DNA of 64,000 nt, taken from positions 1 through 64,000 of the IMG/VR virus record IMGVR_UViG_3300044974_001280; one strand, 5' to 3'. Both the position numbers and the translations under genes were made by a program. Below the pieces are notes generated by a model. The model had not been told where the DNA came from. It saw only the letters and a program-made list of their open reading frames with translations, and ran no database searches. Shown piece by piece: positions 1-46,598 of this stretch. Within the stretch, counting starts at the first letter, position 1; each line of letters opens with the position of its first letter.

Positions 1-642
1 GGTTCGTCCGGAACCTCTGGTTCGAGTGGATCAAGTGGATCTTCCGGATCTTCGGGTTCTTCTGGATCCTCGGGCTCTTCGGGTTCATCTGGAACTAGAG
101 GGACTTCTGGAACCTCTGGTTCGAGTGGATCAAGTGGATCTTCTGGATCTTCGGGTTCCTCCGGAACAAGAGGAACTTCTGGAACCTCTGGTTCAAGTGG
201 CTCTTCTGGATCATCAGGCTCGTCTGGATCTTCGGGTTCTTCTGGAACATCCGGCTCGAGTGGTTCTTCTGGATCAAGTGGATCTTCGGGATCATCAGGG
301 TCTTCTGGTTCTTCTGGATCGTCAGGTTCTTCAGGAACCTCTGGTTCGAGTGGATCAAGTGGATCATCAGGATCCTCTGGCTCTTCTGGATCTTCGGGCT
401 CTTCAGGTTCATCTGGAACTAGAGGGACTTCTGGAACCTCTGGCTCTTCAGGATCTTCAGGCTCTTCAGGATCATCTGGCTCTTCAGGTTCCTCAGGATC
501 TTCAGGTTCCTCTGGAACTAGAGGGACTTCTGGAACCTCTGGCTCTTCAGGTTCATCTGGCTCTTCAGGGTCTTCAGGCTCTTCAGGTTCATCAGGAACC
601 TCTGGCTCCTCTGGAACCTCTGGTTCATCAGGAACCTCTGGT
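1..642 (+). repeat. 9-bp-period Gly-X-Y repeat (about 71 triplets, X/Y almost all Ser/Thr)
   Basis: GGN codon every third codon, with register kept from 1 to 642. Confidence 0.95.
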
Positions 643-3600
643 GAATCTTTAACTATCAACGATAACATAGATAATTATGTTTTAACAGCAACGGGTTTAA
701 CTAATGTAATTCAAGGAGAATCCTTGTTAACATTTGATGGTTCACTACCATCTCCCTTTTTGAACGTAAATGGTGTACACGTTGGCCCAGGTGGTGGTAA
801 TTGTTCAACTAATATCGCTATTGGTGAGTGTTCTCTCTCAAGTAACACTACAGGAATTAAAAATGTTGCCGTCGGATTTGGAAGCCTTTATTCGAGTTCT
901 TTCGGAATTGCCAATGTTGCGGTAGGTTACACTGCCCTCTATAATTTTACATACCCTTCTGATTCTTCGACTGCTTCTTTGGCCGTTGGTTACAAAGCTC
1001 TTTGTTCTTCTACAAATGGTAGAAGTAACACTGCGGTTGGCACCAGATCTATGTTGTCAAATTCAACAGGAGAACGTAATACTGCTTTGGGGTCTGATTC
1101 CCTAATAAGTAACTTAACCGGGTGCTTTAACACAGCCGTAGGTTTTAAAAGTTTGTATAGCAACCTAGGAGGATCTGCTAATATAGCCATTGGTAATCAA
1201 TCTCAATATTCTAACATAAGCGGAAGCTCTAATGTTGCTATTGGCAATTCAGCTTTGTCTTCGAATGCCGGAAATGCTAATGTTGCTATCGGTCAATCCG
1301 CTTTATGCTCGCAGAATTTTGCCTCCGCCTCAAACACCGCCAATGTTGCAGTTGGATATTTTGCCATGGCCTTTAATACAACGGGAAGTGGTAACGTCGC
1401 CTTAGGTACCAGAGCTCTGTTGTGTAATACGACTGGAAATTTTAATACTGCGGTAGGAATCTCTGCTTTAGCAGCAAACAACACTGGTAAATACAACACA
1501 GCCTTGGGCAGATATTCTCTTCGGTGTAATACCTCAGGAAATTTCAATACAGCAGTAGGTTTAAATGCTCTTTTTGCTAACACAACAGGCGCAAGCAACA
1601 CCGCAGTAGGTATCAGTGCTCTTCGATGTAACACAATAGGCACATGCAACACCGCACTAGGTACATCTGCTCTTTATGATAACACAACAGGCTCAGACAA
1701 CACCGCAGTAGGTACAAATTCTCTTCGATTTAACACAACAGGCACAAACAACACCGCAGTAGGTACAAATTCTCTTCGATGTAACACAATAGGTATAAAC
1801 AACATCGCAGTAGGTTCAAGTGCTCTTTGTTTAAACACAACAGGCGTAAACAACACCGCAGTAGGTTATAATGCTCTTCGATGTAACACTTCTGGTTCTA
1901 GCAACACTGCAATAGGGACCAATTCTCTTTTGGTTAATGTAACCGGAAACTCCAACACAGCTCAAGGTTTTTATTCTCTAAGATCCAATACCACAGGGGG
2001 TAATAATACTGCAGTAGGAGCTAGCTCTCTTAGATGTAACATAACAGGAAAATATAACGTAGCAATTGGATCAGGTTCTCTTTGTTGTAATTTAACAACA
2101 AACGGGAGTGTTGCAATAGGTGTAAATGCTCTAAACTTAAACCTAGTTTCTTATAATACCGCCGTAGGTGCTTTTTCACAAAGGTGCACCTCTACAGGTA
2201 CGGAAAATGTTTCTGTAGGATCAAGCACTTTGTTCAATAACACGACTGGTTCAGGTAACACCGCAGTAGGTACAAATTCATTGTGTTCAAATGTATCCGG
2301 TTCAAACAACGTAGCAGTAGGTAGATCTTCTTTATTAACAAATACTACCGGCGGATTTAACACTGCTATTGGATTTGATGCATTAAGAAGTCAGAATTTT
2401 GGTTCAACCTCTACAACTGCCAATGTAGCAGTTGGTTATGGGGCGTTAAAAACAAATTCTACAGGCACAAATAATACAGCTATAGGTACACGTTCGCTGG
2501 AACAAAATGATGCTAATTTTAATACTGCGATAGGTGCATCCGCTCTTCGATGTAACACAACAGGAATACAAAATGTTGCTGTTGGGGCAGGTGTATTGCT
2601 TGTTAACACGGGAGGATGTAATAACTCTGCTGTGGGTTTCTATGCTCTAAGATCAAATACAACAGGAGCCCTTAACACCGCAGTAGGTCAACGTGCTCTT
2701 TATTGTAACACAACAGGCTTAAATAACACCGCAGTAGGTAGCTCTTCTTTATTAACAAATACTACCGGCGGATTTAACACTGCTATTGGATTCCATGCAT
2801 TAAGAAGTCAAAATTTTGGTTCAACCTCTACAACTGCCAATGTAGCAGTTGGTTACAGAGCTTTAACAGTTAATACCACTGGTTGTTGCAATACAGCCTT
2901 AGGTAATAGATCTTTTCAAGCTAATACAATTGGAAACACTAATGTGGCCGTAGGATCTGATAGTTTATTTTCCAGCGTTTCAGCTAACAATAATGTGGCA
3001 GTGGGTATCAATACCCTCCGTAGTAATCTATCGAACGGTAACTTGGTTGCCGTAGGAGCAAATGCCCTTTGTTGTAATTGTGCTGCTAATAATGTGGCCG
3101 TTGGAGCTTTTGCTATGAGATATACCACAACAGGAACAGGGGTAGCTATTGGGTTCCAGGCACTAAGAGATAATGTAACTGGTGCCAATAATGTTGCTAT
3201 CGGTGCTAACGCGATGCGAGATAACAAAGGAGCTAATAATAACGTAGCAGTTGGATATCAAGCTCTCTTTTGCACAACGGGTTCTTCGAACGTTGCACTT
3301 GGCTTTTGTTCTCTAAGAAATAACCAAATCGGGGTCCACAATGTAGGAATAGGCTGCAATGTACAACTTCAAAATATATCAGGAGATAGAAATATAGCTG
3401 TAGGTACACTATCTCTTTCTTGTAATACCACCGGTAACTCGAATGTGGCAATAGGCTATCAATCTTTAAGAAATTCAAACTTCGGTTCCATCTCCACTAC
3501 TGCCAACGTGGCCGTGGGTTACTGCTCATTGGCATGTAATTGTATCGGAAATTCTAATGTAGCAGTTGGAACGAGAACTCTTATTAGCAATCAAACAGGT

Positions 3601-4878
3601 TCTTTTAATACTGCCATTGGGGCAAACGCCCTGAGATCTTTTGCCCCGACCCTCCCTGACACTGTTGGCAACACCGCTGTTGGAGCTTTCGCCTTAGAAA
3701 TCACAACCACAGGAGAAGGAAACGTGGCGGTGGGAAGCAATGCCTTAGATTCGAACGTCGTCGGTAATTTCAATGTGGCCATCGGAACATTCACCTTGTC
3801 CAATCAAAACTTTGATTCTGCCTCCAACACCGCTAATGTGGCGGTGGGTTACAGAGCTTTGGACTCTAATACAACAGGATGCTGGAACACAGCTCTGGGT
3901 ACCCGAGCTCTTGCTTCCAACACAACGGGTTGCGGAAATACGGCGGTGGGTTTAATGTCGCTTTTATGTAACACTTTTGGTAGTTTCAATACTGCCGTTG
4001 GTAATTGTACTTTAATAAGTAACACCACCGGGATTTGGAACACTGCTGTTGGAATGTGTAGTCTCACATGCAACACAACTGGTTGTAACAACACCGCTAT
4101 TGGGGTTGGTGCTCTTTTCTGTAATACAGGAGGGAATAGGAATGTTGCTATCGGTATAAATTCTTTATACTTTAACACTACAGGTTGCGAAAACGTTGCA
4201 GTTGGAAGTTATTCTTTAAAATGTAATAATTCGGGCATTAACAACATTGCAATTGGGATCTCATCTTTATGCCAAAATGAAAATGGTTTCCAAAATATCG
4301 CAATTGGAAACACGTCTCTCTTTTCTAACACAATTGGCTATAGAAATACTGCAGTAGGAAACTTGACATTAGGTTGTAATGTTACTGGTCGAGGTAACAC
4401 AGCAATAGGTCATTCTGCTCTTGGATGTCAAAACACAGACACCACAGGTTCTAACGCCAACGTAGGGGTTGGTTATGGAGCTTTAGAGTGTAATATAACA
4501 GGGAAGTGCAACACAGTAGTAGGCACATTCGCGGGTAGATGTAATCTTGCCTCGGGTAACACTTTTGTGGGCATCATGGCCGGCGCATCTGGCGGCACGG
4601 GCGCTTGCAACACCGCTATTGGAGCATGTGCCATGAGCACTAACTTGACAGGCAGTAGCAACGTAGTGGTAGGATTTAACCAACAAGCATGCAACCGAGT
4701 AGGTGTTTCCATGATTGGAGTGGGTGACACAGCCACCGGTAACAACCAGATGAGATTTGGAAGTACCACAGTAAACAACGGAGAAGTGGTAATGACTCCG
4801 TTATCTGTAGAAGGTTACTGGAAAGTCTTCATAAACGGTACAGAATATTGTTTATTATTACATTCAGGAGGGGTCTAA
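1..4878 (+). CDS. Large fibre/adhesin-like protein (5' partial): collagen-like G-S-S/G-T-S region followed by a long NTAVG beta-roll repeat domain; probable tail or head fibre
   Basis: Frame +1 is open from base 1 (GSSGTSGSS...) through GESLTINDNIDNYVLTATG into the track's 724..4878 ORF, so the true CDS starts before the window. It carries dozens of N(T/V)A(V/I)G repeats. Confidence 0.85.
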   Translation, partial: GSSGTSGSSGSSGSSGSSGSSGSSGSSGSSGTRGTSGTSGSSGSSGSSGSSGSSGTRGTSGTSGSSGSSGSSGSSGSSGSSGTSGSSGSSGSSGSSGSSGSSGSSGSSGSSGTSGSSGSSGSSGSSGSSGSSGSSGSSGTRGTSGTSGSSGSSGSSGSSGSSGSSGSSGSSGTRGTSGTSGSSGSSGSSGSSGSSGSSGTSGSSGTSGSSGTSGESLTINDNIDNYVLTATGLTNVIQGESLLTFDGSLPSPFLNVNGVHVGPGGGNCSTNIAIGECSLSSNTTGIKNVAVGFGSLYSSSFGIANVAVGYTALYNFTYPSDSSTASLAVGYKALCSSTNGRSNTAVGTRSMLSNSTGERNTALGSDSLISNLTGCFNTAVGFKSLYSNLGGSANIAIGNQSQYSNISGSSNVAIGNSALSSNAGNANVAIGQSALCSQNFASASNTANVAVGYFAMAFNTTGSGNVALGTRALLCNTTGNFNTAVGISALAANNTGKYNTALGRYSLRCNTSGNFNTAVGLNALFANTTGASNTAVGISALRCNTIGTCNTALGTSALYDNTTGSDNTAVGTNSLRFNTTGTNNTAVGTNSLRCNTIGINNIAVGSSALCLNTTGVNNTAVGYNALRCNTSGSSNTAIGTNSLLVNVTGNSNTAQGFYSLRSNTTGGNNTAVGASSLRCNITGKYNVAIGSGSLCCNLTTNGSVAIGVNALNLNLVSYNTAVGAFSQRCTSTGTENVSVGSSTLFNNTTGSGNTAVGTNSLCSNVSGSNNVAVGRSSLLTNTTGGFNTAIGFDALRSQNFGSTSTTANVAVGYGALKTNSTGTNNTAIGTRSLEQNDANFNTAIGASALRCNTTGIQNVAVGAGVLLVNTGGCNNSAVGFYALRSNTTGALNTAVGQRALYCNTTGLNNTAVGSSSLLTNTTGGFNTAIGFHALRSQNFGSTSTTANVAVGYRALTVNTTGCCNTALGNRSFQANTIGNTNVAVGSDSLFSSVSANNNVAVGINTLRSNLSNGNLVAVGANALCCNCAANNVAVGAFAMRYTTTGTGVAIGFQALRDNVTGANNVAIGANAMRDNKGANNNVAVGYQALFCTTGSSNVALGFCSLRNNQIGVHNVGIGCNVQLQNISGDRNIAVGTLSLSCNTTGNSNVAIGYQSLRNSNFGSISTTANVAVGYCSLACNCIGNSNVAVGTRTLISNQTGSFNTAIGANALRSFAPTLPDTVGNTAVGAFALEITTTGEGNVAVGSNALDSNVVGNFNVAIGTFTLSNQNFDSASNTANVAVGYRALDSNTTGCWNTALGTRALASNTTGCGNTAVGLMSLLCNTFGSFNTAVGNCTLISNTTGIWNTAVGMCSLTCNTTGCNNTAIGVGALFCNTGGNRNVAIGINSLYFNTTGCENVAVGSYSLKCNNSGINNIAIGISSLCQNENGFQNIAIGNTSLFSNTIGYRNTAVGNLTLGCNVTGRGNTAIGHSALGCQNTDTTGSNANVGVGYGALECNITGKCNTVVGTFAGRCNLASGNTFVGIMAGASGGTGACNTAIGACAMSTNLTGSSNVVVGFNQQACNRVGVSMIGVGDTATGNNQMRFGSTTVNNGEVVMTPLSVEGYWKVFINGTEYCLLLHSGGV
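1579..1884 (+). repeat. Six tandem 51-bp (17 aa) units of the fibre beta-roll
   Basis: Units of type aacacaacaggcNNNNNCaacaccgcagtaggt...ctctt start at 1579, 1630, 1681, 1732, 1783 and 1834. Confidence 0.9.
2314..2855 (+). repeat. 125-bp near-identical direct repeat (2314-2438 and 2731-2855)
   Basis: Manual alignment shows 4 mismatches; both copies encode SSLLTNTTGGFNTAIGF.ALRSQNFGSTSTTANVAVGY. Confidence 0.9.
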
Positions 4879-4909
4879 AAATTAACTTAACAAAATACTT
4901 GAAGTTGAA

Positions 4910-4937
4910 GGAACACTCTTGATTAATTGAGATAAAA
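4910..4937 (+). promoter_or_regulatory. Putative ECF-sigma (middle) promoter for the glycosylation cluster
   Basis: GGAAC-N17-ATAAAA, the same layout as 7 other intergenic sites. Confidence 0.55.
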
Positions 4938-4942
4938 AAAAG

Positions 4943-5599
4943 GTGAAAAAAGTACTCATCGGAACCCCATCCTACGACGGTCGAATTGACACCTGGTTTG
5001 CAGATTCTCTAGTAAGAACTATTAAACAGGCAGACCCCAAACTGATAAACATTCACGCCATTTATCCTTCATATGATTCTCTGGTCCAAAGGGCTAGAAA
5101 CGATCTGGTCAGAATGGCAATGGATGGTGGCTATGACACCCTCTTTTTTATTGATTCCGATGTGGAGTGGGAACCCGAATGGTTTTTTAGATTTTTGGCC
5201 AGACCTGAACCGATCGTGGGAGCAGCCTTGATCAAAAAATCTGATCAAGAGTCCTATACGGTCAAGATCATAAAAAAGAATCTGACCAAATCCGAGGATG
5301 ATGTATTAGTTCAGGTAGATGGTTTAGGAACAGGTTTTCTAAAGGTGGACCGATTTGCCTTGGAAAAACTCTGGTTGATGAGTGAACCTTACGTCCACGA
5401 CGGAGTTCCCAATCGGATGGTTTTTGATTTGAAGATTGTGGATGGTGATTTGATCTCCGAGGATTACGTCATGTGCCACAAATGGCAAAGTTTAGGCTAC
5501 AAAGTGTGGCTGGATCCTAGCATCACCATCAATCACAACGGGGTGAAAAAATATCAAGGCAACTTGTCCTCCTTCCTTCAAAGAAATGGCTATGTTTGA
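4943..5599 (+). CDS. GT-A fold glycosyltransferase (GT2-like)
   Basis: IGTPSY start, RARN, FFIDSD (DxD), GTGF and SEDY motifs. Confidence 0.8.
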   Translation: MKKVLIGTPSYDGRIDTWFADSLVRTIKQADPKLINIHAIYPSYDSLVQRARNDLVRMAMDGGYDTLFFIDSDVEWEPEWFFRFLARPEPIVGAALIKKSDQESYTVKIIKKNLTKSEDDVLVQVDGLGTGFLKVDRFALEKLWLMSEPYVHDGVPNRMVFDLKIVDGDLISEDYVMCHKWQSLGYKVWLDPSITINHNGVKKYQGNLSSFLQRNGYV

Positions 5600-6512
5600 A
5601 AAACCTATGGGTGGCACCGAACTGATGTTCGAAGAATTGAAAAGAAGATTACCTGATTCTGTTTGGGGTAATTACTCCATTTTTAATTATCTTCCCCAAG
5701 CTGATTTTACCAAAAAGACTATTTACTGGAATCAGCTTTCCTGGGATCAACAGGCGGTTCAATTTCTAAAGGATCGGGATCTGGTGGAAAAAATAGATCA
5801 TTTCGTCTTCGTCAGCCACTGGCAGGCGGAGCAATTCAGACAGAGGTACAATATTCCTGGTTATAAGACCCATGTCCTAAAGAATGCCTCTCTCGGAGTG
5901 GAAACCAGACCTGTAGGTCCCCGATCTATCGTCAAATTGTGTTACACTTCCACCCCTTGGAGAGGACTAAATGTTCTTCTGCGAGCCTGGGAAATACTTC
6001 AGCCCCAGAATTGTGAACTCCACGTCTTTTCTTCCTGCCACATTTACGGTCCAGAATTCGGTAAATCTGATGCCCAATACGCAACCTTATACGAAAAGTG
6101 CCGAACCACTCCTGGTATAGTTTATAGGGGCTCTATTCCCAATCCACAGCTAAGAGGGGAGTTACCGAATTTCGATCTGTTGGCCTACCCCTGTACCTTC
6201 GAGGAAACCTCCTGTATCGCCGTCATTGAATCTCTATCCGCCGGTTTAAGGGTTGTTTGTTCCAACCTGGGTGCCCTGCCTGAAACAACAGAGGGCTGGG
6301 CTCGGCTGTACCCTTATCTCATGGATCCCGAAACCCACGCCCGCAGATTTTCAAAAATTCTGAGTTCAGAAATAGAAAAGGTCAGAGACGGCGGTTGGGA
6401 TTCTTCTTTACAAGCTGTCCATTATTCTCGGGGTTGGAGTTGGGACGAGAGAATAAAAGAATGGGTCGATTTTTTTCATCAATTGGCGAATGAACTGGAC
6501 GAAAATTTTTGA
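5586..6512 (+). CDS. GT-B glycosyltransferase (GT4-like); may start at 5592
   Basis: GGTE, FVSHWQ, YTSTPWRGL and YPCTFEETSCIAVIES (EX7E) motifs. Confidence 0.85.
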   Translation: MAMFEKPMGGTELMFEELKRRLPDSVWGNYSIFNYLPQADFTKKTIYWNQLSWDQQAVQFLKDRDLVEKIDHFVFVSHWQAEQFRQRYNIPGYKTHVLKNASLGVETRPVGPRSIVKLCYTSTPWRGLNVLLRAWEILQPQNCELHVFSSCHIYGPEFGKSDAQYATLYEKCRTTPGIVYRGSIPNPQLRGELPNFDLLAYPCTFEETSCIAVIESLSAGLRVVCSNLGALPETTEGWARLYPYLMDPETHARRFSKILSSEIEKVRDGGWDSSLQAVHYSRGWSWDERIKEWVDFFHQLANELDENF

Positions 6513-7104
6513 AAAAATTCAACCTCAGACCTTTTTGGACATTGGAGCCAACGAAGGTAATTTTACCTCTACCCTTTTAAAATTTTATCCTGACTGCAAG
6601 TGTCTGATGGTAGAGCCCAACCCAGCTTGCCGTCCCTTCTTAGTTTCGATCGGTCACCCTTTTGAGATCGTTGCTGTTTCTGGCTCTAACGGTAAGGGTC
6701 TTCTTCATGTTGAAAACTCTAACTCTTTGGCAACAGGTGCTTCTTTGTACAAAGAAAACACTCAATTTTATGCCCCAGGAAAATCACACCAGACAGAAGT
6801 TCAATTGATTACCTTGGATTCTTTGAACCCTTTTCCTAACACCGAGATAGATCTCATTAAGATTGACACACAAGGGTCTGAATTGGACATTTTAAAGGGC
6901 GGGAAACTAACGATTCAACGCACAAAATTTCTCTTGCTGGAAGTATCTCTCTTAGAATATAATTTAAATGCTCCTTTGATAGATGAAGTTCTTGATTGGA
7001 CTTCTGCACACAATTTTAACTTATGTGAGATTGTAAATTATCACCGGCTAGCTAATAATCAAATATTTCAGCTAGATGTTTTATTGATGAGATCTAGCAT
7101 CTGA
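6490..7104 (+). CDS. FkbM-family SAM methyltransferase
   Basis: LDIGANEG, VEPNP and IKIDTQGSELDIL motifs. Confidence 0.9.
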   Translation: MNWTKIFEKIQPQTFLDIGANEGNFTSTLLKFYPDCKCLMVEPNPACRPFLVSIGHPFEIVAVSGSNGKGLLHVENSNSLATGASLYKENTQFYAPGKSHQTEVQLITLDSLNPFPNTEIDLIKIDTQGSELDILKGGKLTIQRTKFLLLEVSLLEYNLNAPLIDEVLDWTSAHNFNLCEIVNYHRLANNQIFQLDVLLMRSSI

Positions 7105-7115
7105 CCTGATATCTT

Positions 7116-7268
7116 GTGATTTACAATTTTAAATATTCCAACTACAATTCAAGGGGAGCAGTAATTGACTATCTAAAAGAAAACAATTTCGGCCGATCTA
7201 TAGACGTTGGAGCTTCCATGAATGGCTGGTCAAAAGATTTCACGACTCATTATGATGTATCCTGGTAA
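7116..7268 (+). pseudogene. 50 aa ORF, probable truncated class I methyltransferase fragment
   Basis: GTG..TAA encodes MIYNFKYSNYNSRGAVIDYLKENNFGRSIDVGASMNGWSKDFTTHYDVSW; IDVGAS resembles SAM motif I. Confidence 0.45.
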
Positions 7269-7303
7269 ATGATGATTTAGATTAAGAAACAATTCTAATT
7301 TTT

Positions 7304-7311
7304 GATATATA
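7304..7311 (+). promoter_or_regulatory. Putative late promoter GATATATA
   Basis: Recurrent motif, 16 nt upstream of the ATG. Confidence 0.7.
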
Positions 7312-7327
7312 GTAACAAAATAATCTT

Positions 7328-7684
7328 ATGGCAAATACACTTTTGTTTGGAAAAATAAGTCCTGTTTTGAGTGTACCACAACAAGCAAATCAATTCAGTC
7401 AAAATATCACTTTTTTAACGGCCGATTATATGGCCGCTATCGCTGATCCATATCCTCTCGGAGCGACACAAGTCAACTTTTCTGTCCTATACGGTAACTG
7501 TCAGTTCAATGAATCTAACGAAATTATAGGATTTACGACCCTCTCTAGATCTGGGATCAATCTATCAGGTTCAGTGATCCAAAGCTGGGGTGTTGATGAC
7601 AAGGTTGTTCTAAATGCTATTGCATCTGCTCAAGGAACATCTATAGTTTCGACCCAAATTGGAACAGTGGATTCTTTTTTCTAG
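7328..7684 (+). CDS. Hypothetical protein, possibly fibre-associated or virion
   Basis: Clean ORF behind a late motif; no family recognised. Confidence 0.6.
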   Translation: MANTLLFGKISPVLSVPQQANQFSQNITFLTADYMAAIADPYPLGATQVNFSVLYGNCQFNESNEIIGFTTLSRSGINLSGSVIQSWGVDDKVVLNAIASAQGTSIVSTQIGTVDSFF

Positions 7685-7704
7685 TTTTTTTAAATTTCTG
7701 ACCT

Positions 7705-8526
7705 TTGGTTCAAAAAATCTTTTACAACAGTTCAATGCCCAGAGCAGGGTCTACTCTGATCCAAAATATACTGGGTCAGAATCCTCTTATTTACCCAACT
7801 CCAACCTCTGGTGTTTTCGAGATGCTCGCCGGGGCTAGAACAATTTTCACAGATGGTATAGAATTTAAAGCTCAATCGGAACAGGAAATGCTGGAGGGGT
7901 TTAAAGGATTCTTGAAAGGGGGACTTTATGGATTCTATAACAATATTACAGATAAACCTTACGTGATGGAAAAGTGTCGGGGCTGGAATTCGGAATGGGA
8001 GTTTGTGAATGCCTTCGATCCCAATCCAAAGATGATCTGTATGATTAGGGATATTAGGGCGGTCTATGCTTCTTTAGAAAAGAAATTCAGACAACATCCC
8101 CTTTTGGATCATCATCTAGCCAACTGGGGTAATTTGTCTGGAACTACCACCGATAAAAGGATCCAGGTTTGGTCGACTTCTCCGCCTATTGGTCCTTCCA
8201 TGGATAGAATCTACCAAGTTTTGGTCCAAGGGTTGCACGAAAAAATTCTGTTTGTTAAATTTGAAGATCTCTGTCGGGATCCAGAGTTTCAGATGAAAAG
8301 AATTTATGAATATCTCGATCTTGAATTTTTTCATCATGATTTTTACAACATTCCACAAATAACCAAAGAAGACGACCGGTGGTACGGTATTTTTGGAGAT
8401 CACGTCATTAGAAAGGAATTAAAGCCAGTGAGGGATGATTTCAGAGAAGTTTTAGGAACTAATGCCTGTAAATTAATTGAGGACAGCTATGCCTGGTTTT
8501 TTAACGATTTCGAATATCAAAGATGA
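7705..8526 (+). CDS. PAPS-dependent sulfotransferase
   Basis: 5'-PSB loop SMPRAGSTL, 3'-PB motif IRDIRAVYAS, and KFEDLCRDP. Confidence 0.9.
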   Translation: MVQKIFYNSSMPRAGSTLIQNILGQNPLIYPTPTSGVFEMLAGARTIFTDGIEFKAQSEQEMLEGFKGFLKGGLYGFYNNITDKPYVMEKCRGWNSEWEFVNAFDPNPKMICMIRDIRAVYASLEKKFRQHPLLDHHLANWGNLSGTTTDKRIQVWSTSPPIGPSMDRIYQVLVQGLHEKILFVKFEDLCRDPEFQMKRIYEYLDLEFFHHDFYNIPQITKEDDRWYGIFGDHVIRKELKPVRDDFREVLGTNACKLIEDSYAWFFNDFEYQR

Positions 8527-9542
8527 AGGTAGGATATAAAACTTCTTCTGAAATCCAGATCTCTCCCGAGCAAAAAGGAGAGATGAATTTACCCAAAGCG
8601 ACTGCCCGTAATTCAGACACAATAGTATCAATAATCACACAACAACAACAGTCCATGGAACATAAATATTTAGTTTGGCACATCGAAGGAGGTTTGGGTA
8701 AAAATGTTGCGGCTACTTCTCTTCTTTTACCCCTGGTAGAGAGATATCCCGAGAGAAAAATAATTGTGGTGGCTTCTTACCCTGAGGTTTTTTTAAACAA
8801 TCCGAACATCTATCGAGTTTATCGAGTTGGTATGACACCGTATTTTTATGACGATTACATTTTGGGTAAGGACACTTTAGTTTTTCGGCAAGAGCCTTAT
8901 TTTCAAAGCGGGCATATTCTGAAACAGAAACATCTGATTCAAAATTGGGCGGATCTTCTAGGATTAGATCTGGTTCAAAATCCTCTGCCTGATTTGAGAT
9001 TTAATATGGTTCAAAGCCAATTAACGAGCAATTGGAAAAGGGAAAGACCCATCTGTCTTATTCAAACAAACGGAGGACCCTTAGAAAATCAAGCCTACAC
9101 CTATGCCTGGACCCGAGATATTCCTATCGATTGGGCAATCTATCTGGCCAACAAGCTTTCCGACGTGTACCACATCATACAGGTCACTAGACCAGGTTCT
9201 CCTCAAATTCCCGGAGCTGAAGTGATTACTTCTCACTTGACCTCCTCTGATCTTTTTTCGCTCCTCAAAATGTCGGAAAAAAGAATTCTGATCGATTCTT
9301 GTCTCCAGCACGCCGCGGCAGCCTTCGGACTTCATGCTTTTGTTTTTTGGATAGGAACATCACCTGAGAACTTTGGTTACGGCTTGCATACTAACATCAA
9401 AGCCCTCCCACCTACAGGACAAACAAAGATGGTGGACTCTTATCTCTTCGATTATTCTTTTGACGGCGTTCTACACGAATGCCCCTATCAAAACGTGAAT
9501 GATATGTTTGATCCCACCCACTTAGAACAGATCTTTGTATGA
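8523..9542 (+). CDS. GT9-like (heptosyltransferase-fold) glycosyltransferase
   Basis: GGLGK N-terminal loop, EVFLNNP and IDSCLQHAAAA motifs. Confidence 0.7.
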   Translation: MKVGYKTSSEIQISPEQKGEMNLPKATARNSDTIVSIITQQQQSMEHKYLVWHIEGGLGKNVAATSLLLPLVERYPERKIIVVASYPEVFLNNPNIYRVYRVGMTPYFYDDYILGKDTLVFRQEPYFQSGHILKQKHLIQNWADLLGLDLVQNPLPDLRFNMVQSQLTSNWKRERPICLIQTNGGPLENQAYTYAWTRDIPIDWAIYLANKLSDVYHIIQVTRPGSPQIPGAEVITSHLTSSDLFSLLKMSEKRILIDSCLQHAAAAFGLHAFVFWIGTSPENFGYGLHTNIKALPPTGQTKMVDSYLFDYSFDGVLHECPYQNVNDMFDPTHLEQIFV

Positions 9543-10000
9543 TCTATTGGTTTACCGGTCAGCCGGGGGCTGGAAAAACAACCCTGGCCAAAGCTTTGAA
9601 GGAGACTTTGGAAATGCAAAACTCGAAAGAGGTAATGCACATTGATGGGGATGATATTCGATCCATCTTTAACAACACAGATTACAGCAGAGCTGGACGA
9701 GAAAAAAACATTCAATTAGCTCAACAGATTTCTCATTTTTTATCTATCAAGGGTCTGGATGTTGTGGTTAGTCTGGTGTCACCTTATTTGGAACAGAGAG
9801 AAGAGTTCAAAAAAAGGATGGGCTCCTCCTTGCAAGAAATTTACGTGCACACAACTGAAATCAGAGGCAGAGAAAAATTCCACGTCGAAGACTACGAAAA
9901 ACCTGAAACTAATTTTATTGAAGTAGATACTACTAATACTTCTATCATCTCAAGTCTAAATCAATTCTATGACCAAAAAATTTTCCCTTTTCATCGGTAG
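9539..10000 (+). CDS. cysC: Adenylyl-sulfate (APS) kinase, compact form
   Basis: WFTGQPGAGKTT, IDGDDIR, DYSRAGREKNI, VSPY and YEKP motifs. Confidence 0.9.
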   Translation: MIYWFTGQPGAGKTTLAKALKETLEMQNSKEVMHIDGDDIRSIFNNTDYSRAGREKNIQLAQQISHFLSIKGLDVVVSLVSPYLEQREEFKKRMGSSLQEIYVHTTEIRGREKFHVEDYEKPETNFIEVDTTNTSIISSLNQFYDQKIFPFHR

Positions 10001-10325
10001 GTGGCAGCCTTTACACGAGGGACATAAACATATTTTTAATGAGAGATTAAAATTAGGTAAGAATGTCTGGATAGCTATTCGAGATGTTACGCCCGATGAA
10101 AACCAACCCTGGACTGCTTCAGAAATCAAAGACAATATAGAAAAAATTTACTCTCGGGAAATCTCGGAGGGAAGGATTATTGTTACCATAGTTCCTGATA
10201 TTGAATCTATTAACTATGGTAGAGGAGTAGGCTATGAGATTATAGAACACGTGGTCCCAGCTGAAATTGCTTCTATTTCTGCTACCAGCATCAGAGAACA
10301 GATGAGAAAAGAAGGAACTTTATAG
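9969..10325 (+). CDS. HxGH-family nucleotidyltransferase (cytidylyltransferase-like)
   Basis: FIGRWQPLHEGH and ISATSIR motifs. Confidence 0.8.
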   Translation: MTKKFSLFIGRWQPLHEGHKHIFNERLKLGKNVWIAIRDVTPDENQPWTASEIKDNIEKIYSREISEGRIIVTIVPDIESINYGRGVGYEIIEHVVPAEIASISATSIREQMRKEGTL

Positions 10326-10334
10326 ATATAAAAC

Positions 10335-10607
10335 ATGAACCAAGAATCTAAACTAACACCAGAAGAGTTAGAAAAAATCATCACTCTTAGAGACAGCATT
10401 AGAACCAATGTTGAAAAAATTGGCAAGATGAACATCCAAAAATACTTCCTTCAAAAGGAACTGGATTTTGTCAATGAACAATTGTCTGCCCTTTATGACG
10501 AAAGCATGACCCTGTCAGAGCAGGAAAAGGCATCGATTCAAGAAATTGTTACAAAATACGGCGAGGGTCAATTAGATTTCTCAACAGGAGTTTACTCTAA
10601 GTCATAA
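10335..10607 (+). CDS. Small coiled-coil hypothetical protein
   Basis: Heptad-rich, ending YGEGQLDFSTG. Confidence 0.65.
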   Translation: MNQESKLTPEELEKIITLRDSIRTNVEKIGKMNIQKYFLQKELDFVNEQLSALYDESMTLSEQEKASIQEIVTKYGEGQLDFSTGVYSKS

Positions 10608-10609
10608 AG

Positions 10610-11674
10610 ATGACTCCAGTAGAGGTTCTCAGAAGTACCAAAAGGCATCTATTAAAATCCCTGTGGGAAGTTCAAAAGGCACTGGATGAAGCTACCAATT
10701 CACAATTGAGAATTCTTTACGTGGCCCCTCATCTTTCTACAGGAGGTATGCCACAGTACCTATATAAACTCATTGAAATTTTCAATACCCAGGCGGATGT
10801 TTACTGTTTAGAATACAGCAACATCTCTGACGAGTACGTCGTGCAAAGAAACAAAATTCAAAAATTACTAGGCAGCAGATATTACCGGATAGACGATCAC
10901 GAGGACAAGAGTCAGTTTTTGCAAATTCTAGACGAGATCTGTCCAGATGTCATTCATTTTCAAGATTTTGTAGAATTCTTTTTGGATAGGAAAATCTGCG
11001 AACACGTCTATGCCTACAATCGGCCCTGGTACATCATGGAAACCCCTCACTCTTCGGCCAATGTACCGAGTGACAAATATTGGTTACCTGACAAACTAGT
11101 TATGGTCAATCAGTGGATGGCGGATAAATTTTCCGACTGTGGCATTCCGACCGATGTTTTAGAATACCCTATTGAGCATTTTGAAAGAAGAATCTCCCGA
11201 TCAGAAGCCCAAGGAATCCTGGGTTTAGACCCTGGAAAGAAACACGTTATCAATGTCGGTCTTTTCACTCCGGGAAAAAATCAAGGTGAACTGATATCCT
11301 TTGCTAGCCAGATGTTGGATTTGCCCGTTGAGTTTCATTTCATCGGCAACACGGCAGTTAATTTTCAAGAATATTGGCAGCCTCTCGTTTCAAATCTTCC
11401 TGAAAACTGTCGTGTGTGGGGAGAAAGAGGGGACGCCGAAATTTTTTATCAAGCGGCAGATCTGTTTGTTTTTAATTCAACTTGGGAACTGAATCCAATT
11501 GTTATTAAAGAATGTCTTTCTTGGCAACTTCCGATCCTCATGAGACGTCTGACCTCATACGGTGATTTCTACGACACTGATCCCTTAGTAACTTATTTAG
11601 AAGAAGGAACTACAGGCTTGGATTTTGAAACAAATCTTGATAGACTAAAAAATTTAGTGCAGCCAGAATCATGA
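10610..11674 (+). CDS. GT4-family glycosyltransferase
   Basis: PHLSTGGMPQY, VGLFTPGKNQ and ADLFVFNSTWELNPIVIKE motifs. Confidence 0.85.
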   Translation: MTPVEVLRSTKRHLLKSLWEVQKALDEATNSQLRILYVAPHLSTGGMPQYLYKLIEIFNTQADVYCLEYSNISDEYVVQRNKIQKLLGSRYYRIDDHEDKSQFLQILDEICPDVIHFQDFVEFFLDRKICEHVYAYNRPWYIMETPHSSANVPSDKYWLPDKLVMVNQWMADKFSDCGIPTDVLEYPIEHFERRISRSEAQGILGLDPGKKHVINVGLFTPGKNQGELISFASQMLDLPVEFHFIGNTAVNFQEYWQPLVSNLPENCRVWGERGDAEIFYQAADLFVFNSTWELNPIVIKECLSWQLPILMRRLTSYGDFYDTDPLVTYLEEGTTGLDFETNLDRLKNLVQPES

Positions 11675-12855
11675 AAAACAGAGGTATCAAAGTTTACACC
11701 GAGGTAATCAGACAGAAAAAATCCAGAGTTCCTGATCAAACGGGTTTTGTATTCACCTTTGATTATGGACCAAAAGTGGTGATGAGTGGTAATAATCCAG
11801 AGCTCAAAAGAACCGTTAAGTTTTGGGACAAAAAAAATTCTAAATACGAGTATATTGGTGAAATACAGCCTGGTCTTTTTACAACTTTGTTTAGAAAATG
11901 GTATACCCCCTGGGTAGCTGAAATTTTTGATGGAGAAGAAAAGATTTGGTCGTATGATTTCGAGGAAAATCTCAAGGGCCAAAAAATTTTAGTATCTATT
12001 GACAGTGCCTCTATAGGAGATACTCTAGCCTGGATGCCTGTTATAGCTAAATTTGGTCAAAAGCACGAAGCTGAACTACTGGTCAGTACTTTTTGGAATC
12101 CTCTTCTATCTAATTTTTTTGAGAGCATTCAATTCGTAAATCCTGGCTATCGTCATCCCTCCATTCACAGCATTTTCGGAATTGGTTGGTACGAGGAGGA
12201 CGATAGATACAAACACCCCAGAGATCCAAGAACCATTTCTCTCCAGCACGTGGCTTCGGATCTTCTAGGGATCGAAGAGACCTCAGAATTGCTGATGCCT
12301 AACATCTCAGCCCAACTGGGATCTCAGCCTCGTCCTATCGAAGAAAAATATGTTTGTATAGCAACTGAATCGACAGCTAACGCAAAACATTGGCACTATC
12401 CTGGAGGATGGCAAGAGATAGTTAATTATTTAAGAGAACTCGGTTACAAGGTTGTAGTAATTCATGAACAAGCCAACAGATTAGAAAATGTAGAGGATCG
12501 CACTGGTTCAATTGATCTTTGGGAAAGAATGGTAATGCTGCATCACGCAGAGTTTTTTATTGGGATAGGGTCTGGAATTTCTTGGTTGTCCTGGGCGGTG
12601 AACGTTCCTGTCGTCATGATCTCTGGATTTTCTCTCCCTTTTTGTGAATTTTCCACCCGAAATTATCGGGTGATAAATCCCCATGTGTGTCACGGATGTT
12701 TCAACGATCCAAGATTTAAATTCGATAAAGGAGACTGGAACTGGTGTCCTAAATTAAAAAACACGGAGAGAATTTTTGAGTGTACGCGTCAGATCACTCC
12801 TGGAATGGTTAAAGAGGCCATTCACAATCTAATTCAAGATATTTCTCAGGGCTAA
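11671..12855 (+). CDS. Autotransporter strand-loop-strand O-heptosyltransferase (TibC/Aah, BAHT family)
   Basis: SIGDTLAW catalytic-loop motif, GIGSGISWLSW, VMISGFS, and a four-Cys Fe site (CHGC...WCP...FECT). Confidence 0.85.
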   Translation: MKNRGIKVYTEVIRQKKSRVPDQTGFVFTFDYGPKVVMSGNNPELKRTVKFWDKKNSKYEYIGEIQPGLFTTLFRKWYTPWVAEIFDGEEKIWSYDFEENLKGQKILVSIDSASIGDTLAWMPVIAKFGQKHEAELLVSTFWNPLLSNFFESIQFVNPGYRHPSIHSIFGIGWYEEDDRYKHPRDPRTISLQHVASDLLGIEETSELLMPNISAQLGSQPRPIEEKYVCIATESTANAKHWHYPGGWQEIVNYLRELGYKVVVIHEQANRLENVEDRTGSIDLWERMVMLHHAEFFIGIGSGISWLSWAVNVPVVMISGFSLPFCEFSTRNYRVINPHVCHGCFNDPRFKFDKGDWNWCPKLKNTERIFECTRQITPGMVKEAIHNLIQDISQG

Positions 12856-35506: not shown

Positions 35507-37111
35507 ATGGCAGGTTTTAGCGAGAATCCAAACACCAATCCAATCTTTCAGAAGATTAGGGATTCGGTTAAAAATCTGAGTAATTTCGGGATCCGATATG
35601 GTGACATGGTTGTCAAAAATTCTCAGGCTATTGGGGCCACTGAAGCTGAATTTTTGAAAAAAGGACCTATTGAGGATGAAACCACCTTCTTTTCTTTAGG
35701 TCGCCAAGACACAACCACCAGGCAGTATATTTCTTATTTTGATAAAGACTATGCGGGAAAAAGAGATTATCTGAGAAAATTCTCTTTGAACCCTGAGATA
35801 GAATACATTTTAGACACTGTCTGTGATGAATCTATTACTTACGATTCTTATAATTTCTTTGCCTATCCAGCTTTTCTGAACCTATCTAATCTTAAAAAGT
35901 CCGTTATCGATCGCATCGATTCGACTTATAAGAAACTGTATGACATGTTCGGTTTCAACGATGACATTTCGGCCTGGCAGTATTTCAGGCAAATGCTGGT
36001 GGATGGATTTATTGCCTTTGAGATTGTCTTTGATGATAGCGGCAGAAACATCATCGGATTTAAAGAGCTAGATGCCACGACCCTCATGCCTTCTGTGGAA
36101 AAACAGAAAGACGGAACTTTTTTGAATGTTTGGTATCAATACCCTAAAGATGAAAGAAAAAGAAGAATGTTGTACGACTCTCAGGTCATCTACATTTCTT
36201 ACGCCAAAGGCAATTCTATTTCTAGAGTTAGCTACACAGAAAGACTGATTAGACCTTACAATGTCTTGAGAATTATCGAATACACCAGAGTTATTTGGTC
36301 GGTCATGAATGCTTCTTTTAGGATGAAGATGACCATTCCGGTGGGATCTAGATCCCAACAGAAAGCAATGCAAACTCTGGGAGAATTGATGTCTATCTAC
36401 AAAGAGGACATCCAGTTTAACGACGAGAGTGGAGAACTTTCTGTTAACGGCCAACCCAAGATTCAGTTCTATAAGAACTATCTAATGCCCAAAGGAGCAG
36501 GAGGCACCCCTTCTATTGAGCCTCTAAACACGGCAGGCCCCAATCTGAATGATCCTGCCCCATTAGCCTATTTTTTCGATAAATTAGTGCAGGAATCAAA
36601 AATTCCTTTTTCCCGGTTTCAGGGGCCTGATGGCGGATCTATTGGAAAATACGCTAATGCTGCCGAAGGTTTAGATAAAGAAGAAATCAGATTCTCTAAA
36701 TTTATTATGAGGCTTAGATCTGTATTTCAGGATATCCTGGTTAAGCCTCTATGGATTCAAATCTGTAAAGATTTTCCCCAACTAGAAAAGGATTACACTT
36801 TTAAATCCCAATTAGGTCTAAGCTATGTTTCAGATAACCCCTTCCGGGTTAACCAGGAGATTGAAACCATTACGAAGAGAAAAGAATTTATAGATTCTCT
36901 TTATACCCTCACCGACGAGGAAGGAAATCCTTTCTTTTCTATCTCATATCTAGTGGAAAACTACATGGGTCTTACTGAGGATGATATAGCTTCTAATAAA
37001 AAAGCCAGAAGTGATAACAAATTAAAATCTGCTGAAGAAGCTGCGGCTGCCAGCGCATCTCCGCCAGCGGGCGAGTCCGAGCCAGAAGTAGCACCAGAAA
37101 CCCCAGTATAA
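35507..37111 (+). CDS. Portal protein (gp20-like), paralog 1
   Basis: EIEYILDTVCDE, WQYFRQMLVDG, SY.ERLIRPYN.LR, KIPFSRF and EEIRF.KFI.RLR motifs. Confidence 0.85.
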   Translation: MAGFSENPNTNPIFQKIRDSVKNLSNFGIRYGDMVVKNSQAIGATEAEFLKKGPIEDETTFFSLGRQDTTTRQYISYFDKDYAGKRDYLRKFSLNPEIEYILDTVCDESITYDSYNFFAYPAFLNLSNLKKSVIDRIDSTYKKLYDMFGFNDDISAWQYFRQMLVDGFIAFEIVFDDSGRNIIGFKELDATTLMPSVEKQKDGTFLNVWYQYPKDERKRRMLYDSQVIYISYAKGNSISRVSYTERLIRPYNVLRIIEYTRVIWSVMNASFRMKMTIPVGSRSQQKAMQTLGELMSIYKEDIQFNDESGELSVNGQPKIQFYKNYLMPKGAGGTPSIEPLNTAGPNLNDPAPLAYFFDKLVQESKIPFSRFQGPDGGSIGKYANAAEGLDKEEIRFSKFIMRLRSVFQDILVKPLWIQICKDFPQLEKDYTFKSQLGLSYVSDNPFRVNQEIETITKRKEFIDSLYTLTDEEGNPFFSISYLVENYMGLTEDDIASNKKARSDNKLKSAEEAAAASASPPAGESEPEVAPETPV

Positions 37112-46554: not shown

Positions 46555-46586
46555 AATTTTATCAGAGCTAGATCAAAAAATTTTCT

Positions 46587-46594
46587 TAAATTTG
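46587..46594 (+). promoter_or_regulatory. Bacteroidota-type -7 element TAAATTTG
   Basis: Perfect TAnnTTTG, ending 5 nt before the ATG. Confidence 0.55.
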
Positions 46595-46598
46595 CTGC

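Follow-up and report, generated by a model that had tools for sequence, protein, structure and literature searches.

A lake-water phage carries a cluster of sugar-, methyl- and sulfate-adding enzymes directly behind a giant serine-rich, collagen-like fibre gene. This arrangement raises the question of whether the virus glycosylates its own fibre. The analysed window comprises the first 64,000 nucleotides of a 230,445-bp IMG/VR virus record (IMGVR_UViG_3300044974_001280). A sequence-only reading had proposed that the phage repurposed the arrangement of the TibC/Aah heptosyltransferases, which modify autotransporters encoded next door, to place heptose on its own fibre and then extend and methylate it. 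Our comparative analysis supports that proposal with several refinements. Because no biochemical or proteomic data exist, the substrate assignment rests on gene neighbourhood.

The fibre gene

The window begins within the 3' part of a fibre gene (1-4878, + strand) whose N-terminus is lost at the contig end. The first 213 residues (bases 1-639) are exactly 71 Gly-X-Y triplets, consisting of 53 GSS, 14 GTS and 4 GTR, and Pfam Collagen matches with an E-value of 9e-30. A linker of roughly 57 residues connects this tract to about 75 copies of a 17-residue repeat, followed by a short C-terminal domain. The motif was detected 66 times, with 50 hits spaced exactly 17 residues apart, and has the consensus N-T-A-V-G-x-x-S/A-L-x-x-N-T-T-G-x-x. 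The visible protein is 16% Ser, 16% Gly, 13% Asn and 12% Thr. A single-chain AF2 model of residues 448-686 is all-beta at pLDDT 80, with no solved look-alike. Homologous fibres occur in L003 and L330/L331 (L numbers designate the loci compared here). An ORF at 26-652 in another frame is a by-product of the triplet repeat.

The downstream enzyme cassette

The genes following the fibre are all on the + strand. The first (4943-5599) encodes a GT-A fold glycosyltransferase. It has no Pfam hit, however, it contains a DSD motif and its Atlas neighbours are GT2/Anp1. It is 66% identical to the gene at the same position in L330 and is also found in L003. The second (5586-6512) encodes a GT4 glycosyltransferase (retaining GT-B; PF13692/PF00534) with an EX7E motif, also 66% identical in L330. 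An FkbM-family SAM methyltransferase follows at 6490-7104 (PF05050 at 7e-21, TIGR01444 at 1e-20). The 118-residue protein encoded at 7328-7684 has no family hit and its role is unknown, but it is 44% identical at the same position in L330.

The sequence-only reading recognized the GT-A, GT4, FkbM and GT9-like genes but missed the genes for sulfation. A PAPS-dependent sulfotransferase is encoded at 7705-8526 (PF13469 at 2.6e-15, PF00685 at 3e-12), with a PRAGST 5'-PSB loop and an RDIRAVYAS 3'-PB motif. It is 77% identical in L330 and is present in L077/L079. A short APS kinase, which makes PAPS from APS, is encoded at 9539-10000 (PF01583 at 2.2e-21) and has the GQPGAGKTT P-loop and the DGD motif, although its TIGR00455 score of 80 bits is below the cut-off of 139. 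A third gene that was missed (9969-10325) encodes a 118-residue HxGH nucleotidyltransferase (PF01467 at 1e-5). Only weak NMNAT-like hits and no RfaE domain II match were found for this protein, and it could be a heptose-1-P adenylyltransferase or part of the sulfate-activation route. In L077/L079 it travels with the sulfotransferase, the GT9-like gene and the APS kinase.

Between the sulfotransferase and the APS kinase lies a gene (8523-9542) for a predicted GT9-fold, heptosyltransferase-like glycosyltransferase from a large viral family with 3666 homologues. It has no Pfam hit, and profile alignment (hhalign) against the bacterial autotransporter heptosyltransferases (BAHT) is weak. However, an AF2 model built from a 22-sequence alignment has pLDDT 74, and its top 31 Foldseek PDB hits are all GT9. 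These are led by 3tov at 6e-9 and include 1psw, WaaF, WaaC and TibC, with 3tov, 1psw, WaaC and TibC spanning E-values of 6e-9 to 4e-5.

A small 90-residue protein (10335-10607) without a family hit is conserved directly upstream of the GT4-BAHT pair in the window's phage clade (46-62% identity in L002-L037). The GT4 glycosyltransferase of that pair (10610-11674, assigned by Pfam) is found next to or fused with BAHT in 75 of 80 viral loci.

A BAHT-family enzyme from a separate clade

The last gene of the cluster (11671-12855) encodes a true BAHT. It scores 300 bits (1.8e-89) on TIGR04414 against a cut-off of 200, and the TibC structures 4rb4/4rap match at 4e-64 over residues 28-391, with the SIGDTLAW loop and all four Cys aligned. 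The catalytic Asp, the four ADP-heptose contacts and the four iron-finger Cys are all retained (D117, T235, K239, R286, W305 and C340/C343/C359/C371). The roles of these residues were shown experimentally in TibC (PMC4358343). D117, K239, W305 and the four Cys are invariant across 108 dereplicated homologues. T235 is invariant in a 13-sequence alignment and is Thr or Ser in 107 of the 108. R286, the adenine contact, is kept in the window enzyme but replaced in about half of its clade.

Phylogenetic analysis places the enzyme in a deep clade (clade B, 100% SH-aLRT support) that is sister to the classical autotransporter enzymes (clade A) and contains all the viral BAHTs. The enzyme is not a recent borrowing from autotransporter systems. 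Most members of clade B, including the window enzyme, lack the beta-hairpin thumb of TibC. Without this thumb the enzyme probably does not form the TibC dodecameric ring and must engage a thin Gly-rich chain differently from a beta-helix.

The phage also encodes an HldA-like heptose-7-phosphate kinase (38753-39751, + strand), likewise missed by the sequence-only reading. TIGR02198 scores 303 bits (cut-off 345) with the next family at 58 bits, and HldA (PDB 4e84) matches at 5.7e-46. The gene is conserved in two related genomes, G001 and G002. However, the record lacks GmhA, a GmhB-type phosphatase, a recognisable HldC/RfaE domain II and HldD, so the donor depends on an unknown host. If the host is in Bacteroidota, it may or may not make ADP-heptose.

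Association with serine-rich Gly-X-Y proteins

Adjacency does predict the substrate in this family, as clade-A BAHTs of Kosakonia and Franconibacter in the same dataset are followed directly by AIDA autotransporters (PF16168 at 7e-96 and 2e-150). In contrast, clade B sits beside S/T-rich Gly-X-Y proteins. Of 38 dereplicated BAHT-seeded viral loci, 22 have such a protein within 10 kb, and many of the others are cut at contig ends. The gene orders differ. The collagen gene lies upstream on the same strand in the window's clade, is convergent and 0.4 kb away in L041/L062 (ORFs of 3122 and 3196 residues with up to 956 triplets), and follows immediately downstream in L320. However, one sub-clade of close relatives (L013-L018, L037) has GAQ/GAK rather than GSS triplets at the visible fibre end.

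In a reverse search, of 44 viral contigs selected only by a (G-[S/T-type]-[S/T-type])x8 DNA pattern, 12 carry a BAHT, compared with none of 46 contigs selected by a non-Ser collagen pattern (Fisher p = 7.7e-5). Nonetheless, three of six near-complete S/T-collagen viral contigs have no BAHT. In bacterial genome records, 21 of 27 clade-B loci have an S/T Gly-X-Y protein in the locus, 19 of them within 3 kb, although a few of these records are phage contigs binned into MAGs. The proteins are mostly small lipobox proteins with (GSS/GTS)n tracts, usually less than 200 bp away. None of 32 clade-A loci has one (Fisher p = 6e-11, not corrected for phylogeny). The co-occurrence counts are not phylogenetically independent.

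Domain fusions tie the other enzymes to the BAHT, with GT4-BAHT, GT2-GT4-BAHT, FkbM-GT(DXD)-GT4-BAHT and methyltransferase-GT4-BAHT forms observed. In addition, the whole unit recurs in a different phage lineage (L330/L331), where an S/T collagen plus 17-residue-repeat fibre is followed by the GT-A, GT4, FkbM, 118-residue protein, sulfotransferase and GT9-like genes at 44-77% identity, and then by a GT4-BAHT fusion.

Proposed function of the cluster

Given its genomic context, we infer that the window encodes a virion-fibre glycosylation system, with moderate confidence (0.62). In the infected cell's cytoplasm the BAHT would transfer heptose from ADP-heptose onto serine hydroxyls of the (Gly-Ser/Thr-Ser)n tract. 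The donor would be made by host enzymes with help from the phage's HldA-like kinase. The tightly linked GT4 (10610-11674) would add the next sugar, and the variable cassette (GT-A, GT4, GT9-like, FkbM, sulfotransferase with APS kinase) would then extend, O-methylate and sulfate the glycan. The sugar and the order of the enzymes are likewise inferred. TibC modifies Ser in folded beta-helix repeats, and nothing shows that a BAHT can act on a Gly-X-Y chain; prediction of the complex gave no answer. The result would be a long, densely glycosylated, negatively charged fibre resembling a bottle brush. It is possible, although speculative, that the glycan stiffens or stabilises a proline-free triple helix, protects it from proteases, and mediates first contact with host or particle surfaces.

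It is less likely that the acceptor sites are Ser/Thr in the 17-residue beta repeats, with the collagen tract only a spacer. TibC and Aah act on Ser in repetitive beta-helical passengers such as AIDA-I and TibA (PMC4358343). The 17-residue repeat is predicted to be all-beta, with Ser at a fixed position and N-S/T-x-G turns, and the repeat fibre also accompanies BAHT in L003-L005, L034, L056-L061, L322 and L330/L331. However, the repeat is found in only a few lineages, and most BAHT-linked fibres and all the bacterial neighbours have (G-S/T-S)n tracts but no such repeat. Additionally, the repeat is Thr-rich at its turns, whereas TibC was found to modify Ser and not Thr, and the thumb that builds the ring through which a beta-helix is proposed to slide is missing.

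We consider it unlikely that the cluster instead remodels host LPS, capsule or (GSS)n surface lipoproteins to block superinfection or aid release. Phage glycosyltransferases that alter host surface glycans are well known (PMC12619734), bacteria encode (GSS)n lipoproteins beside clade-B BAHTs, and GT4, GT9, FkbM and sulfotransferase genes are typical of LPS and EPS loci. However, the genes sit inside the structural module, between the fibre and the neck, terminase and sheath genes, and the association follows the phage's own collagen-like fibre across gene orders and lineages. No flippase, polymerase or lipid-carrier enzyme was detected among the ORFs scanned between 4943 and 12855.

Modification of other virion proteins (capsid, sheath, neck) also appears doubtful. 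Mycobacteriophage glycosyltransferases modify capsid and tail-tube subunits (Freeman et al. 2023, cited in PMC12619734), and the order fibre-cassette-GT4-BAHT-neck-TerL-sheath is inherited in the window's clade, so adjacency within that clade carries little weight. However, distant phages with other gene orders still place the BAHT next to S/T collagen ORFs, the reverse pattern search is specific for S/T-type collagen, and no other ORF of the 230-kb record has a comparable S/T-rich Gly-X-Y tract. Least likely is a BAHT by descent that uses another donor sugar or is catalytically altered, leaving a non-heptose glycan, for although the adenine-contacting Arg varies within clade B, most ADP-heptose pathway genes are absent and the host is unknown, the window enzyme keeps all five TibC catalytic and ADP-heptose residues and the phage and its close relatives carry the HldA-like kinase.

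Relationship to known systems

The enzyme belongs to the same family as those of the TibC-TibA and Aah-AIDA-I systems of E. coli, with roughly 40% alignable identity to TibC over the full length, and likewise lies next to a long repetitive Ser-rich surface protein. However, it is encoded by a virus, its neighbour is a phage fibre with a Gly-X-Y tract rather than a type V autotransporter, and it is paired with a GT4. The recurrence of this enzyme-fibre pairing in many unrelated phages and in some bacteria suggests a previously undescribed way of glycosylating Gly-Ser-Ser proteins.

Mycobacteriophage glycosyltransferases also lie in or near the structural genes, and have been shown to decorate virion proteins with O-glycans (Freeman et al. 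2023, cited in PMC12619734). Those enzymes belong to different families with no BAHT, target the C-termini of capsid and tail-tube subunits, act in Gram-positive-type hosts and involve no sulfation or heptose supply genes.

Microcystis phage Mel-JY01 (PP395634) is the only named cultured phage in the searched collection with a BAHT domain (40% identity). The domain is fused behind a GT4 domain in a 1226-residue protein annotated 'methyltransferase FkbM', and an S/T-rich Gly-X-Y open frame of 202 triplets, not annotated as such in the record, lies 1.7 kb upstream. This phage differs in lineage and host (a cyanobacterium), its enzymes are fused into one polypeptide, and no HldA-like kinase was found.

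The clade-B loci of Arenicellales, Methylococcales, Polaromonas and related bacteria encode BAHTs with 35-42% identity, mostly with the short thumb region, and are immediately flanked by proteins with (GSS/GTS)n tracts. These are cellular loci without phage genes, a GT4 partner or a methylation or sulfation cassette, and the neighbouring proteins are small signal-peptide or lipobox proteins, often ending in poly-Asp.

Genome and phage context

The window is the first 64 kb of a 230,445-bp linear IMG/VR virus record estimated to be 85% complete. Near-identical DNA is present in at least 18 lake-water metagenome runs. The window encodes a terminase, a 1220-residue tail sheath, a T4-type neck protein, two portal-like proteins, and replication and repair genes. 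The portal-like genes (35507-37111 and 37117-38742) are adjacent, both match the portal-protein family phrog_213 at about 5e-59, and form a tandem pair of portal paralogues. The repair set is sizeable, as UvsE-like UV-damage endonuclease and Fpg-like DNA glycosylase genes stand side by side at 45670-47402, next to clamp-loader, guanylate kinase and 5'-3' exonuclease genes.

A megablast search with 20 kb of the sequence found no similarity to known phages, and a blastn search with the cluster found only a 130-bp hit in a 735-kb metagenomic phage. The terminase is only 31-37% identical to those of huge metagenomic phages, Sphingomonas phage PAU, Tenacibaculum phage PTm1 and the Lak phages. It is therefore a large, uncultured myovirus-type phage of unknown host. 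Contigs in RNA libraries match four short pieces of the cluster, but as DNA carry-over cannot be excluded this evidence for transcription is ambiguous.

The fibre gene

Frame 1 is open from base 1 to the stop at 4878, so the fibre gene is cut by the contig end. The visible 1625 residues begin with exactly 71 consecutive Gly-X-Y triplets (53 GSS, 14 GTS and 4 GTR), and Pfam Collagen (PF01391) matches at 9e-30. A short linker is followed by about 75 copies of a 17-residue unit, N-T-A-V-G-x-x-S/A-L-x-x-N-T-T-G-x-x, with 50 of 65 successive motif spacings being exactly 17 residues. The repeat region (811-4878) carries Cys at a recurring position, with 52 Cys in the visible protein, and many N-x-T/S sequons (NTT, NTS, NIT, NVT). 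No HMW1C-type N-glycosyltransferase was seen in the cluster. Long ORFs in other frames (26-652, + strand, frame 2) and on the minus strand over 1-4878 are by-products of the triplet and 17-residue repeats, and could be mis-called as genes.

The sequence-only reading described the repeat region as a beta-roll. A single-chain AlphaFold model of 14 units is all-beta, with two short strands per unit and pLDDT 80. However, a Foldseek search with this model found no significant match (best E about 1, TM below 0.25), and a phmmer search of the fibre against PDB found nothing. We therefore accept an all-beta repeat but not a specific beta-roll fold. Two further structural-looking ORFs in genome C1, at 110935-112449 and 112448-114559 and outside the window, have short Gly-X-Y runs (10-11 triplets). 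They lie beside a 3778-residue ORF at 99591-110924 and are probably other fibre or baseplate components.

Glycosyltransferases and methyltransferase

The sequence-only reading placed a GT-A enzyme, two GT4 enzymes, an FkbM methyltransferase, a GT9-like enzyme and a TibC/Aah-type protein directly behind the fibre gene, and these assignments hold, although the evidence for the GT9-like enzyme is mixed. The GT-A gene at 4943-5599 has a DSD motif, and its Atlas neighbours are GT2/Anp1. The GT4 genes lie at 5586-6512 and 10610-11674, and the FkbM gene lies at 6490-7104 (7e-21). The gene at 8523-9542 was resolved only at the level of the predicted fold. It gave no hit in Pfam (including PF01075), NCBIfam or PDB sequence searches, and the hhalign result was weak (probability 5%). 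However, a model built from 22 homologues matches only GT9 structures among its top 31 PDB hits, led by 3tov at 6e-9 and followed by WaaF, WaaC and TibC, with TM about 0.5-0.58.

The gene at 11671-12855 encodes a member of the BAHT family (TibC/Aah; TIGR04414). It scores 300.4 bits (E 1.8e-89) against a curated cut-off of 200, covers profile positions 9-373 of 374, and aligns with TibC structures from residue 28 to 391 at E 4e-64. The functional residues were mapped using the TibC structure paper (PMC4358343), and all are present. The catalytic base D110 of TibC corresponds to D117, which lies in a SIGDTLAW loop and is invariant in 108 homologues. The ADP-heptose contacts T226, K230, R286 and W305 correspond to T235, K239, R286 and W305, although R286 varies elsewhere in the clade to which this enzyme belongs (clade B, described below). 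The iron-finger cysteines 339, 342, 358 and 370 correspond to C340, C343, C359 and C371, and are conserved in 107 of 108 homologues.

One defining feature of TibC is missing. The beta-hairpin thumb (tip F265/V266) that builds the dodecameric ring is lost through a 9-residue deletion that removes TibC 264-272. In addition, the neighbouring gene is not an AIDA/TibA-type autotransporter, as the fibre hits only Pfam Collagen and has no AIDA, ESPR or autochaperone domain.

Sulfation and possible heptose supply genes

Four genes were overlooked in the sequence-only reading. The first, at 7705-8526, encodes a PAPS-type sulfotransferase (PF13469 at 2.6e-15; 57.7 bits against a cut-off of 27 for the PF13469/PF00685 sulfotransferases), with the 5'-PSB (PRAGST) and 3'-PB (RDIRAVYAS) motifs both visible in the sequence. 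The second, at 9539-10000, encodes a short APS kinase (PF01583, 2.2e-21) overlapping it by reading frame. The third, at 9969-10325, encodes a 118-residue HxGH nucleotidyltransferase. Together these form a sulfation module inside the glycosylation cluster, and the same genes travel together in the viral loci L077 and L079 and partly in L330. The small nucleotidyltransferase next to an APS kinase could be an unusual sulfate- or heptose-1-P adenylyltransferase. However, a search for an HldC/RfaE domain II role revealed only weak NMNAT-like similarity.

The fourth gene, at 38753-39751, encodes an HldA-like protein, probably a heptose-7-phosphate kinase, and lies between the portal genes and the DNA ligase. 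It scores 303 bits on TIGR02198, below the curated cut-off of 345, but the next family scores only 58 bits, and it matches B. cenocepacia HldA (4e84) at 5.7e-46. The gene is conserved in two related phage genomes (G001, and the 319-kb G002) but absent from more distant BAHT-carrying phages. No GmhA, GmhB-type phosphatase, RfaE domain II or HldD was found in the record. The second CTP_transf-like domain in the genome belongs to an RNA-ligase-like fusion. At 126811-128757 of genome C1, outside the window, a 653-residue ORF combines an N-terminal ligase-like domain (KMDGS motif) with a C-terminal NMNAT-like GRFQPFHLGH nucleotidyltransferase domain.

Association of the BAHT with Ser/Thr-rich Gly-X-Y proteins

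Whether the fibre is the substrate can only be argued from comparative genomics, and we tested this from both directions. IMG/VR contains at least 192 stretches encoding relatives of the enzyme, and the protein database contains 1256 at E below 1e-10. In the window's own clade the order is always a collagen-like fibre cut at a contig end, a variable glycosyltransferase cassette, a small protein, GT4, BAHT, neck, terminase and sheath. Within one clade this could be mere inheritance. However, phages whose BAHT is only 30-42% identical and whose gene order differs show the same pairing. There the BAHT is fused behind a GT4 domain into proteins of about 700 to 1450 residues, and beside these lie giant ORFs that are almost pure (G-S/T-S)n. 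Examples are the viral loci L041 (3122 residues, 852 triplets, convergent, 0.4 kb away), L062 (3196 residues) and L055. After dereplication at 90% identity, 22 of 38 BAHT-seeded viral loci have an S/T-rich Gly-X-Y run within 10 kb, and many of the rest end at a contig edge.

In the reverse direction, we scanned IMG/VR for a DNA pattern encoding eight G-[S/T-type]-[S/T-type] triplets and searched the whole contigs with the BAHT model. Twelve of 44 contigs had it, although most are fragments of 3-40% completeness, and among those at least 90% complete 3 of 6 had it. A control pattern for collagen triplets without Ser gave 0 of 46 (Fisher p = 7.7e-5). Around the 12 hits, the collagen ORF is the direct or near neighbour of the BAHT in L320, L321, L322, L323 and L325, and in L080. 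A complex prediction of the BAHT with fibre residues 134-347 scored 0.00, which is no evidence either way.

A distinct clade of BAHTs in phages and bacteria

A scan of one genome per prokaryotic species gave 80 loci. A maximum-likelihood tree of 108 dereplicated BAHT domains splits into two clades, each with 100% SH-aLRT support. Clade A (32 sequences) is purely bacterial and occurs in Enterobacteriaceae, Burkholderia sensu lato, Selenomonadaceae and Elusimicrobia. All members have a 22-residue thumb region, and none has an S/T Gly-X-Y protein in its locus. In the two loci examined, the next gene is an AIDA-type autotransporter (PF16168 at 7e-96 and 2e-150) with ESPR and autochaperone domains.

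Clade B (76 sequences) holds every viral sequence plus 27 from bacterial genome records. Its thumb region is mostly 12-13 residues long, and is 13 residues in the window enzyme. Of the 27 members from bacterial records, 21 have an S/T Gly-X-Y protein in the locus, 19 of them within 3 kb and usually within 200 bp. In an Arenicellales chromosome the clade-B BAHT lies among a sensor kinase, a sigma-54 regulator and metabolic genes, and is flanked by three small proteins, each with a signal peptide and lipobox, a (GSS/GTS)n tract and a poly-Asp tail. Similar proteins occur in Methylococcales, Polaromonas and others. Such proteins, which often end in poly-Asp, are found in the bacterial locus L337 (8420-8833, 11076-11687 and 12029-12490) and also in L334, L344, L347, L385, L400 and L405, and are a candidate new class of heptosylated surface lipoproteins.

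Thus, in the clade-A loci examined the neighbour is the known substrate class, while in clade B the neighbour carries a (G-S/T-S)n tract, whether in a phage or in a cell. This is the strongest argument that the tract is the acceptor. It is not corrected for shared ancestry, although the hosts and gene orders are diverse. However, a sub-clade of close relatives shows GAQ/GAK rather than GSS triplets at the visible fibre end.

Conservation of the accompanying enzymes

The other enzymes appear to belong to the same pathway. The GT4 at 10610-11674 accompanies the BAHT in 75 of 80 viral loci. In other phages GT4, GT2 or DXD-type GT-A, FkbM and other methyltransferase domains are fused with the BAHT in one polypeptide. 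The cassette from 4943 to 9542 (GT-A, GT4, FkbM, a 118-residue protein, sulfotransferase and the GT9-like gene) recurs at 44-77% identity in a different phage lineage, represented by loci L330/L331, which has a 584-residue sheath. There it again sits directly behind a fibre with (GTS/GTT)n triplets and the same 17-residue repeat, and is followed by a GT4-BAHT fusion. The sulfotransferase, GT9-like gene, APS kinase and nucleotidyltransferase also travel together in L077 and L079.

Possible function of the cluster

The family membership, the intact active site and the gene context are evident from the sequence. Although no glycan has been observed, we infer that the BAHT puts heptose on Ser of the Gly-Ser/Thr-Ser tract in the cytoplasm, before or during fibre assembly. 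The donor, which is inferred from conserved residues and one pathway gene, would be ADP-heptose from the host pathway, boosted by the phage kinase. The GT4 would add a second sugar, and the cassette enzymes would then extend, methylate and sulfate the glycan, with PAPS supplied via the APS kinase. More speculatively, the glycan may stabilize and stiffen a proline-free helix, shield it from proteases, and provide an anionic, adhesive surface. There is no Pro and there are almost no charged residues in the X and Y positions, so the stability of a (GSS)n helix is uncertain. Without the thumb, the enzyme probably works as a smaller oligomer than TibC.

The closest known system is TibC-TibA / Aah-AIDA-I, which shares the family and probably the chemistry. 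The cluster described here is viral and has a BAHT of a different clade, probably a different oligomeric architecture and a different substrate class, and different partners. Protein O-heptosylation is so far known only for autotransporter adhesins of pathogens. Phage virion glycosylation has been demonstrated essentially only in mycobacteriophages, with other enzymes and other targets. We found no paper on phage BAHTs or on heptosylated Gly-X-Y proteins in the partial body of literature searched, and a 2025 paper on large aquatic 'moraphages' notes core glycosyltransferases only in general terms.

It is possible that thumb-less clade-B BAHTs define a widespread, undescribed protein glycosylation system whose acceptor is the (Gly-Ser/Thr-Ser)n tract, operating on the giant collagen-like fibres of many aquatic phages and on small surface lipoproteins of Proteobacteria. 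In this phage it would be built up, using phage-supplied heptose phosphate and PAPS, into a methylated and sulfated glycan that turns the fibre into a mucin-like brush. We put this forward tentatively, as somewhat less likely than not. If it is right, a second BAHT branch, probably as large as the first, modifies Gly-X-Y tracts, and hundreds of environmental phage contigs would carry heavily glycosylated, possibly sulfated fibres. A heptose-7-phosphate kinase and an APS kinase would then be phage auxiliary genes that serve virion decoration. This would bear on how large aquatic phages find hosts and survive outside them, how proline-free 'collagens' are stabilized, and what the many unexplained glycosyltransferase genes in jumbo-phage structural modules do.

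Clade-B loci in deposited records

Several 'bacterial' MAG contigs carrying clade-B BAHTs (L333, binned in a Saprospirales MAG, and L357, L363 and L377) are really phage contigs, with neck, terminase, sheath, GT4 partner and fibre genes. Their bins (Saprospirales, Winogradskyella, Flavobacteriales and Bacteroides) give a weak hint that the hosts are in Bacteroidota.

In Microcystis phage Mel-JY01 (PP395634; L082), the deposited annotation calls the GT4...BAHT fusion (4750-8430) 'methyltransferase FkbM'. The annotation also places small minus-strand hypothetical genes over a plus-strand open frame of 1016 residues (2-3049) with 202 S/T-rich Gly-X-Y triplets, and the start of the record lies inside this frame.
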